DNA from: Octopus sinensis
Lineage: Eukaryota
DNA: 64,000 bases
Assembly: GCF_006345805.1 (NCBI RefSeq)
Contig: NC_043004.1
Coordinates: 75,020,001 to 75,084,000 of the forward strand
Direction of reading: 5' to 3'
Both the position numbers and the translations under genes were made by a program. This document shows, one piece after another, positions 23,397-24,208 of the stretch. Below the pieces are notes generated by a model, which saw only the letters and a program-made list of their open reading frames with translations, was not told the origin of the DNA and ran no database searches. Numbering within the stretch: the first letter of the stretch is position 1; each line of letters opens with the position of its first letter.

Positions 23397-23574
23397 CTGT
23401 CGGCTGGCGAACTGGGTGATAACTAATCACATTCACAGGTCTTATCAAGGAAGTCTGCACTAAATTCTTGGCCTTGCAATTAAACTTGTGACATCCCATT
23501 AATTTATTAGTGAAAGGGTCTGTCCAGTAAATCATATCTTCAAAAATGGTGAGGCCATAGGGATTGGTAATATA
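23397..23574 (-). CDS. LRP2: LRP2 exon, last blade of propeller 3 (YITNPYGLTIFEDMIYWTD...YHPVRQPT)
   Basis: PYGLTIFEDMIYWTD and HPVRQP motifs; acceptor ttcattcag and donor gtgagt; 178 nt, phase 0 to 1. Confidence 0.95.
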
Positions 23575-23938
23575 CTGAATGAAAGGTGAGGAAAAAGAAA
23601 AGAAAAAATGAATTTTATCTTGCATTTCTGTATTGGAAAATGATTTTTCAAACTTTCTAAATTACATTTATTAATGTAAATTTGATTAGTTCTCATTGGC
23701 TAGATTCACCTAGACAAAATTTCAAATGTTGCTAGATCAATCATCCCAGTATTTACTAACCTGAACACCTAACTGTTAACAGATCAAGAAATATATATAT
23801 ATGTATATATATATATATATATATATATATATATATATATATATATATATATATATATATATGTATATATGTATATATATATATATATATGTATATATGT
23901 ATATATATATATATATATGTATATATGTATATATATAT

Positions 23939-24038
23939 NNNNNNNNNNNNNNNNNNNNNNNNNNNNNNNNNNNNNNNNNNNNNNNNNNNNNNNNNNNNNN
24001 NNNNNNNNNNNNNNNNNNNNNNNNNNNNNNNNNNNNNN
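23939..24038. other. Assembly gap, exactly 100 N (scaffold join)
   Basis: Run of 100 N, with (TA)n on the left and LRP2 coding sequence cut off on the right. Confidence 0.99.
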
Positions 24039-24208
24039 TGGATACTTGTATGGTGGGAATGCAATTACACTGCTTGGAGAAAAGAGTTGGTCTCTCAGAG
24101 TAACATTTATACCTCGTCCAAATTTATCCATTTGCATCAGTTTGCCTTCATTTTGGGACACCCAGTATATTTCACTTTCATACAGGTCAATACTCACTGG
24201 GTTAATTG
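24039..24208 (-). CDS. LRP2: LRP2 exon, last blade of propeller 8, truncated by the gap (AINPVSIDLYESEIYWVSQNEGKLMQMDKFGRG...YKYP)
   Basis: Acceptor gtcatttcag, phase 1; resembles human [33 protein letters not shown]; no donor is visible before the N run. Confidence 0.92.

Follow-up and report, generated by a model that had tools for sequence, protein, structure and literature searches.

LRP2 exons on the two sides of a scaffold gap

The window analysed here is a stretch of 64,000 nucleotides of the Octopus sinensis assembly GCA_006345805.1 (CM016866.1:75,020,001-75,084,000), whose LRP-like coding sequence, all of it carried on the minus strand, is that of LRP2 (megalin). Only one run of N's is present, exactly 100 N at 23939-24038 (CM016866.1:75,043,939-75,044,038, unstranded), and this scaffold gap lies between a contig to its right, designated C1, and the contig of the complete gene, whose part below window position 23939 is referred to as the left contig. 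C1 (CM016866.1:75,044,039 to at least 75,147,101) extends without a gap for at least 103 kb, corresponding to positions 1 to 103063 of locus L005 (GCA_006345805.1 CM016866.1:75,035,033-75,147,101), to which window positions 15033-64000 are 100% identical. In the direction of the minus strand, the order right of the gap (63203 to 24039) is from propeller 7 blade 6 of LRP2 through LDLa cluster IV to propeller 8 blade 6, and left of the gap follow a (TA)n tract, intron-like sequence, propeller 3 blade 6, an EGF, a long intron and propeller 4. This succession of propeller 8 and propeller 3/4 over the gap had been pointed out in a preliminary description of the window, and was borne out by PDB matches and by exon maps against two proteins, P0033 (4381 residues, the closest full-length reference) and P0202 (CAI9727402.1 of Octopus vulgaris, 4019 residues).

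The exons of C1, all on the minus strand, begin in the window with that of propeller 7 blade 6 (62982-63203), which was located by tblastn and PDB phmmer and corresponds to P0202 residues 2879-2952 and to human LRP2 from ~3394. The EGF after propeller 7 and the first LDLa repeat of cluster IV share the exon 59919-60158, recovered by motif scan, PDB search and exon maps, and LDLa repeats 2-11 are distributed over seven exons within 34869-54811 (54572-54811, 50275-50418, 47644-47901, 43286-43414, 42192-42368, 38494-38724 and 34869-35015), as given by the motif scan, the exon maps and a 531-bit collinear match to LRP2 3394-4040. Cluster IV right of the gap thus counts 11 LDLa repeats in the motif scan, with repeat 9 interrupted by an intron. 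Two EGF exons precede propeller 8 (32827-32967 and, of the calcium-binding type, 32018-32149; motif scan, exon maps and Pfam), whose blades 1-5 occupy the exons 31036-31314, 27984-28112 and 24848-25042, supported by the PDB match to LRP2 4116-4304 and the exon maps. The last exon, that of propeller 8 blade 6 (24039-24208), is preceded by ...TTTCAG, begins in phase 1 and is cut by the contig end. Taken as a whole, C1 covers P0033 residues 2120 to 4118 strictly in sequence, the outermost units being blade 6 of propeller 5 and blade 6 of propeller 8.

As a separate observation within this contig, the minus-strand exon of LDLa repeats 2-3 (54572-54811) differs at 10 of its 80 residues from both the O. 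sinensis protein XP_036361360.1 and the O. vulgaris orthologue. The exons flanking it are mostly 93-100% identical, the downstream neighbour (LDLa 4, 50275-50418) being just 87.5% identical, and this region is a local hot spot of divergence.

On the left contig, again on the minus strand, the sequence next to the gap (23575-23938) is intron-like and consists of a (TA)n microsatellite, then stops in three frames, a polypyrimidine tract and the acceptor TTTCATTCAG. The microsatellite itself, 148 nt at 23791-23938, forms the very end of the contig. The first exon, that of propeller 3 blade 6 (23397-23574), starts in phase 0, ends in phase 1 and is identical to P0202 residues 1240-1298, and the EGF exon linking propellers 3 and 4 (23070-23195) is identical to P0202 residues 1299-1340. 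Propeller 4 follows in the exons 5177-5356, 3210-3473, 1816-1992 and 444-692, corresponding to P0202 1341-1618 and to human LRP2 ~1750-2007. When LRP2 proteins were mapped exon by exon, no match to the EGFs after propeller 8, the transmembrane segment or the tail was obtained in the window, in keeping with what the preliminary description had stated.

Continuity and reading frame at the gap

That the right contig ends within coding sequence had also been noted earlier, and this proved to be correct: its last base, 24039, lies 4 nt short of the ...AAAG/gtaagt donor known from a sister copy of the locus (L004, described below) and from Octopus bimaculoides. The propeller 8 blade-6 exon is hence open into the N's, while the complete exon ends with CCA AAA G/gtaagt and is followed by a CT-rich, low-complexity intron, which is a natural breakpoint for a contig. 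On the other side, the (TA)n tract gives way to ~230 nt in which every frame has stops, and a polypyrimidine tract then leads up to the acceptor, read as TTTCATTCAG/TAT, and the whole of the 364 nt from the gap to the propeller 3 blade-6 exon contains stops in all frames.

The splice phases of the two exons that face each other are not compatible: that of propeller 8 blade 6 ends in phase 1 and that of propeller 3 blade 6 starts in phase 0. A hypothetical splice over the gap would read ...YKYPKVYYQSLWPHHF and then a stop, with a frame shift and termination after 13 codons. Neither does uninterrupted sequence cross the novel junction, since the window has a 100-N gap at this point and the sister copy runs for 9 kb into other sequence. 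The (TA)n at the gap did not match the (TA)n downstream of the sister copy, and the sequences downstream of propeller 8 in the sister copy and in O. bimaculoides gave no match to the left contig. Because of the phase mismatch, the stops and the truncation at the contig end, the two sides of the gap are not continuous and a splice across it is not in frame.

Assignment to LRP2

In searches of PDB with phmmer, a 637-residue join of the exons 63203 to 32018 matched human or mouse LRP2 collinearly over 3394-4040 with 531 bits, as compared to 263 bits for cluster III. The propeller at 31314 to 24039 matched LRP2 4116-4304 with 168 bits, all other propellers scoring at most 91 bits, and the left-contig exons (23574-23397, 23195-23070 and 5356 to 444) matched LRP2 1643-2007 with 209 bits, other positions reaching at most 87 bits. 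The human coordinates that the preliminary description had given (about 3400-4300 and 1660-2000) thus turned out to be accurate, with matches at 3394-4304 and 1643-2007. The exon maps fall in the same places: against P0033 the window runs unbroken from 3194 to 4118 and then falls back to 1489 to 1871, and against P0202 it runs from 2879 to 3762 and then from 1240 to 1618.

Further support comes from the domain content. The protein encoded on C1 (P0032, XP_036361362.1, 1798 residues, bearing the window's own variants) contains 21 Ldl_recept_a stretches by Pfam, along with Ldl_recept_b, EGF_CA, cEGF and FXa_inhibition, and the left-contig peptide contains Ldl_recept_b and EGF. The LDLa repeats of P0032 are arranged in clusters of 10 and 11 with a single propeller in between, which is the architecture of LRP2, as in the domain table of human LRP2 one propeller (3230-3463) separates clusters III and IV. 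LRP1 has three propellers at the position where LRP2 has one between the 10- and 11-repeat clusters. P0202 is collinear with human LRP2 over 303-4540. The tail of P0202 and of its O. sinensis counterpart P0203 carries FSNPMF, and the transmembrane exon was found in four loci, L004, L006, L007 and L001; hence an NPxY-type tail and a single-pass transmembrane segment, which are beyond the reach of the window's copy, are present at other loci. The gene is an ordinary LRP2 orthologue that is already annotated.

Models of the complete gene

P0202 and P0203 were found by listing the 90% cluster of P0032, as the word-indexed protein search returns cluster representatives only. The left-contig exons recur in P0202 verbatim at 1240-1340 and, with ~1% differences, as far as 1618, and those of the right contig at 2879-3762, after which P0202 continues with an EGF, a further EGF, the transmembrane segment and the tail. 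The O. vulgaris LRP2 gene that encodes it occupies a range of 194,688 bp in canonical order with no nested gene call, and given this range there is no room for a 103-kb insert.

P0203 (XP_036361360.1, 2483 residues) represents O. sinensis LRP2 from propeller 5 to the tail. Its first ~1300 residues, from propeller 5 through most of propeller 7, have no exon of their own in the window, and what P0203 matches there, at 87-100% identity, are only the duplicated exons of C1. According to the gene tables, from which the adjacency of P0203 to the window was read, a 1146-residue NCBI model covers all of L005 and reaches past both of its ends, and the same model, with an identical Pfam list, stops 60 bp before the start of P0203. 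Because of this 60-bp spacing and the lack of own exons in the window, P0203 starts just past the left end of the window, and because the 1146-residue model spans C1 and ends at P0203, P0032 and C1 are nested, in the scaffold, in an intron of the full gene. The 1146-residue model has exons upstream of C1 and, to judge from its range and end point, would then use those of the left contig, and together with P0203 it would make up the whole LRP2 gene of O. sinensis.

A second full set of exons from propeller 5 to the tail thus follows the left contig, and since the left contig continues into this set of its own, every C1 exon is present twice. Deleting C1, and not swapping the two contigs, restores the canonical order. 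The arrangement in the window is not common to close relatives, O. vulgaris being canonical with nothing nested and O. bimaculoides canonical after propeller 8; octopus megalin is of canonical architecture, as judged from the model in O. vulgaris and from the second of the O. sinensis models.

Sequence following propeller 8

The sister copy L004 (GCA_006345805.1 CM016866.1:74,482,733-74,515,346), which was reached via P0001, a 344-residue O. sinensis protein, lies on the same chromosome in the same orientation, 552 kb further in the direction of the gene. Over window positions 39605 to 24039 it is 99.2-99.8% identical, with 55 mismatches in 14,046 bp. Its contig Y (CM016866.1:~74,482,733-74,506,266) begins at a 100-N gap, overlaps the final 15.5 kb of C1 and extends beyond the end of C1 for 9 kb without a gap, containing AAAG/gtaagt, the CT-rich intron, an EGF exon (L004 24230-24370), an EGF in two exons (~28280-28360 and ~29995-30075) and a transmembrane exon (~31200-31330).

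The same succession is found in O. bimaculoides. Its unplaced scaffold L003 fits an N gap of the chromosome piece L001, and L003 together with L001 25237-27675 aligns to L004 22210-31362, the L001 part alone to L004 28188-31362. The O. bimaculoides protein P0182 comprises an EGF, a stalk, a transmembrane segment and KKRR, and the order in this species is propeller 8, EGF, EGF and transmembrane segment, as in L004. L001 is full of N runs, and unplaced scaffolds carry the exons of propeller 4 (L002) as well as the end of propeller 8 and the EGF next to it (L003), so that this assembly informs on what comes after propeller 8 and not on the order of the whole gene. The true continuation of C1 is therefore EGF-EGF-transmembrane.

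Some features of L004 deserve mention in their own right. Single-base frameshifts occur in its propeller 8 blade-6 exon (23560-23600) and in its transmembrane exon (~31230-31300), which stem either from errors of the long-read consensus or from the decay of a copy without function, and because of them the NCBI models at this locus are truncated. L004 also has a 100-N gap of its own (8981-9080). Contig X (1-8980), on the upstream side of this gap, bears no relation to the upstream sequence of the window and contains only retroelement open reading frames and a frameshifted EGF-like exon at ~430-600; the joining of contigs X and Y is another non-collinear join within the LRP2 region.

Redundant copies and their divergence

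At least four non-identical sequences of the LA9-to-propeller-8 segment are present on the chromosome within ~1.1 Mb, namely those of P0203, C1, contig Y and L006 (CM016866.1:75,539,103-75,588,692), the last of these in opposite orientation and starting at a 100-N gap. Mismatch rates between the O. sinensis copies are 0.39-1.13%, and 2.3-3.0% against O. vulgaris. C1 and Y differ by 0.39% over 14 kb; Y and L006 start at 100-N gaps and C1 ends at the gap of the window. Divergence at an allelic level is thus combined with ends at contig ends, as expected of false duplication. NCBI treats the copies as separate genes, the locus having at least six models, among which XP_036361355.1 is named LRP8-like and XP_036361357.1 is a 76-residue stub. 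The O. sinensis assembly as a whole consists of 20,491 contigs and has 5.2% duplicated BUSCOs, versus 0.4-0.5% in O. vulgaris and O. bimaculoides (PMC10700109); O. vulgaris split from O. sinensis ~2.5 Myr ago, and the two genomes are largely collinear (PMC10700109).

Some of this redundancy probably reflects a locus that is truly duplicated. In O. vulgaris, a second copy from propeller 8 to the tail (L007) lies outside the main gene, with most of its exons unannotated. Its protein, CAI9727407.1, comes five accessions after CAI9727402.1, and this spacing suggests that L007 is situated a few genes away from the main gene. The transmembrane exon exists in two versions, PVVLLLIMGGLILVGYLLI and PIVLLLIMGGLTLAGY[YF]LI, with neighbouring exons nearly identical. 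Type 1 occurs in P0202 (3861-3889) and P0203 (2327-2355), and type 2 in L004, L006 (40754-40846), L007 (14291-14380) and O. bimaculoides (L001 ~27464-27675), such that both types are found in O. vulgaris as well as in O. sinensis. The other exons of L007 are 96-100% identical to those of the main gene. The two exon types hint at a real second partial LRP2 locus or at an old polymorphism. Species-specific residues are common to the copies within each species, and this sharing, together with L007, is compatible with gene conversion, or with haplotigs having been retained in both assemblies. Sorting of the copies into alleles and paralogues by diagnostic residues gave a mosaic pattern, and a second partial locus of LRP2, genuine and kept homogeneous by gene conversion, is plausible.

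Origin of the scrambled order

Taken together, the gap is very probably a scaffold join between contigs carrying different copies of the LRP2 region, C1 being an extra partial copy misplaced in the complete gene. The left contig would be part of the complete LRP2 and would continue past the window into propeller 5 and on to the tail, and C1 would be a redundant, 3'-truncated copy of the back half of the gene, extending from propeller 5 blade 6 to propeller 8 blade 6. The scaffold would place C1 in the intron between the propeller 3 blade-5 and blade-6 exons of the complete gene, and because of this placement the strand reads propeller 8 straight into propeller 3/4. Judged from the sequences, C1 appears to be misplaced and not nested, because the O. 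vulgaris gene has no room for it and has its only extra copy outside, and because C1 ends inside an exon at a contig end and contig Y overlaps it. Most likely C1 belongs with this overlapping contig 552 kb downstream, and it would be either an uncollapsed haplotig or a piece of a genuine second partial LRP2 locus. The fragments ending at gaps or contig ends, in both orientations over 1.1 Mb, have the appearance of redundant contigs that Hi-C scaffolding dispersed. The scrambled exon order belongs to the scaffold and not to the animal, whose receptor is not rearranged.

Several points weigh against this explanation. At 33 of the 44 sites variable among P0032, P0203 and P0202 it is P0032 that is the odd one out, with P0203 equal to P0202, and C1 is not a trivial haplotig of P0203. 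Four LA9-to-propeller-8 sequences in one diploid animal require at least two real loci; two haplotypes cannot supply four distinct sequences, so that not all of the copies can be accounted for by haplotigs alone. The use of left-contig exons by the 1146-residue model is deduced from its range and end point, and a real extra copy could in principle reside in that intron, the gap concealing its 3' end.

This last possibility amounts to a real nested or tandem partial paralogue inside the LRP2 intron, of which the gap would hide only the last exons (EGF, EGF, transmembrane and tail), and it is the foremost alternative, even if an unlikely one. The four non-identical copies on one chromosome, the second copy in O. 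vulgaris outside the main gene and the transmembrane-exon types common to both species together suggest at least one genuine extra locus, and Hi-C scaffolding did set C1 near the gene. Nevertheless, the main gene of O. vulgaris, with its 195 kb and 4019 residues, has nothing nested in it and the extra copy is located outside. At the 3' side, the copy on C1 breaks off at the contig end, 4 nt before its exon is complete and ahead of a low-complexity CT tract, C1 overlaps contig Y 552 kb away, and the extra copies are fragments bounded by contig ends or 100-N gaps and lying in both orientations. Of the tandem paralogues raised as an alternative in the preliminary description, it holds that the contigs belong to different LRP2 copies, but C1 is probably misplaced and not truly nested. 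A bolder form of the same idea is somewhat less likely still: the back-half copy would be a real, lineage-specific and truncated locus, a mini-megalin that has a transmembrane-exon type of its own, occurs in both O. vulgaris and O. sinensis and, in the latter, is nested in the parent intron.

A simple swap, in which a single-copy LRP2 had two consecutive contigs placed in reversed order, was the explanation originally preferred, and is very improbable, being already contradicted. Both contigs are in one orientation, and their exon contents (P0033 1489-1871 and beyond, and 2120-4118) would come close to meeting were the left contig to end in propeller 5. The left contig, however, has its own set from propeller 5 to the tail in P0203, as the 1146-residue model that spans C1 ends 60 bp before it. 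The C1 exons are duplicated and not unique, P0032 and P0203 differ at 36 of 1798 residues and are hence not one and the same sequence, and two further partial copies (L004 with contig Y, and L006) are present on the chromosome. What stands of the earlier proposal of misassembly is that the scramble is an assembly artefact, and what does not is the swapped order of two single-copy contigs. The accompanying rule that the existence of two exon sets would refute misassembly fails here, since the extra sets are fragments bounded by contig ends or 100-N gaps.

A receptor whose exons were truly shuffled or circularly permuted, in the order propeller 7, cluster IV, propeller 8, propeller 3 blade 6, EGF and propeller 4 within one transcript, which had also been considered and for which only the exon order of the scaffold on one strand speaks, is rejected as next to impossible, as its junction is an assembly gap with the upstream exon cut by a contig end, the splice phases clash with a stop after 13 codons, two consecutive blade-6 exons cannot make a six-bladed propeller, and propeller 8 is succeeded by EGF, EGF and transmembrane segment in O. 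vulgaris, in O. bimaculoides and in the second O. sinensis copy alike.

Other features of the window

A non-long-terminal-repeat retrotransposon on the minus strand (10567-14927), which is not part of LRP2, lies in the intron that separates the EGF exon from the first exon of propeller 4. Its second open reading frame (ORF2, 10567-13836) encodes 1090 residues with an endonuclease and a reverse transcriptase, an ORF1-like frame of 473 residues is situated at 13509-14927, and the element is apparently intact and resembles long interspersed elements. A second, broken reverse-transcriptase fragment is located on the plus strand at 8175-10190. Arrays of tandem repeats with units of 62 bp and 331 bp, together with several long (TA)n tracts, occupy 19663-21166, 15143-15738, 21401-21777 and 23791-23938, and an element of ~200 bp resembling short interspersed elements occurs many times throughout the window.

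Significance

The biological weight of these findings is small, and they are chiefly a practical caution for users of GCA_006345805.1. The LRP2 region of CM016866.1 at ~74.48-75.59 Mb holds one complete gene and at least three partial, near-identical copies, and LRP gene counts, inferences on exon order and claims of expansion drawn from this assembly would be wrong. A second partial LRP2 locus with a different transmembrane exon in the lineage of O. vulgaris and O. sinensis, if true, may represent a modest gene-family finding.

Comparison with known systems

Within each of the two contigs, the window shares the domain grammar and order of vertebrate LRP2 (PDB 8EM4, 8JUT and 9CWM), P0202, P0203 and P0032. 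Common to these are the 10- and 11-repeat LDLa clusters around one YWTD propeller, the EGF pairs, and the last propeller with the EGFs, transmembrane segment and tail that come after it. Unlike LRP2, the window is without the C-terminal EGFs, transmembrane segment and tail, and it butts non-adjacent stretches (3394-4304 and then 1643-2007) against each other at the gap. As read from P0203, the octopus LRP2 protein has fewer membrane-proximal EGFs than vertebrate LRP2.

Segmental tandem duplication is resembled in that a second copy of the 3' part is present in the assemblies of two species and that the O. sinensis copy is oriented as its parent. The differences are that most exons of the O. 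vulgaris copy are unannotated and that the O. sinensis copies have frameshifts, which may be assembly errors. In comparison with the false duplications and misplaced haplotigs of Hi-C-scaffolded long-read assemblies, the four sequences exceeding two haplotypes and the transmembrane-exon types common with O. vulgaris set this locus apart, but it is like them in its near-identical copies with 0.4-1.1% mismatch, in the endings of these copies at contig ends or 100-N gaps, in their spread within ~1 Mb of the parent locus in both orientations, and in the raised rate of duplicated BUSCOs of the assembly in which they are found.

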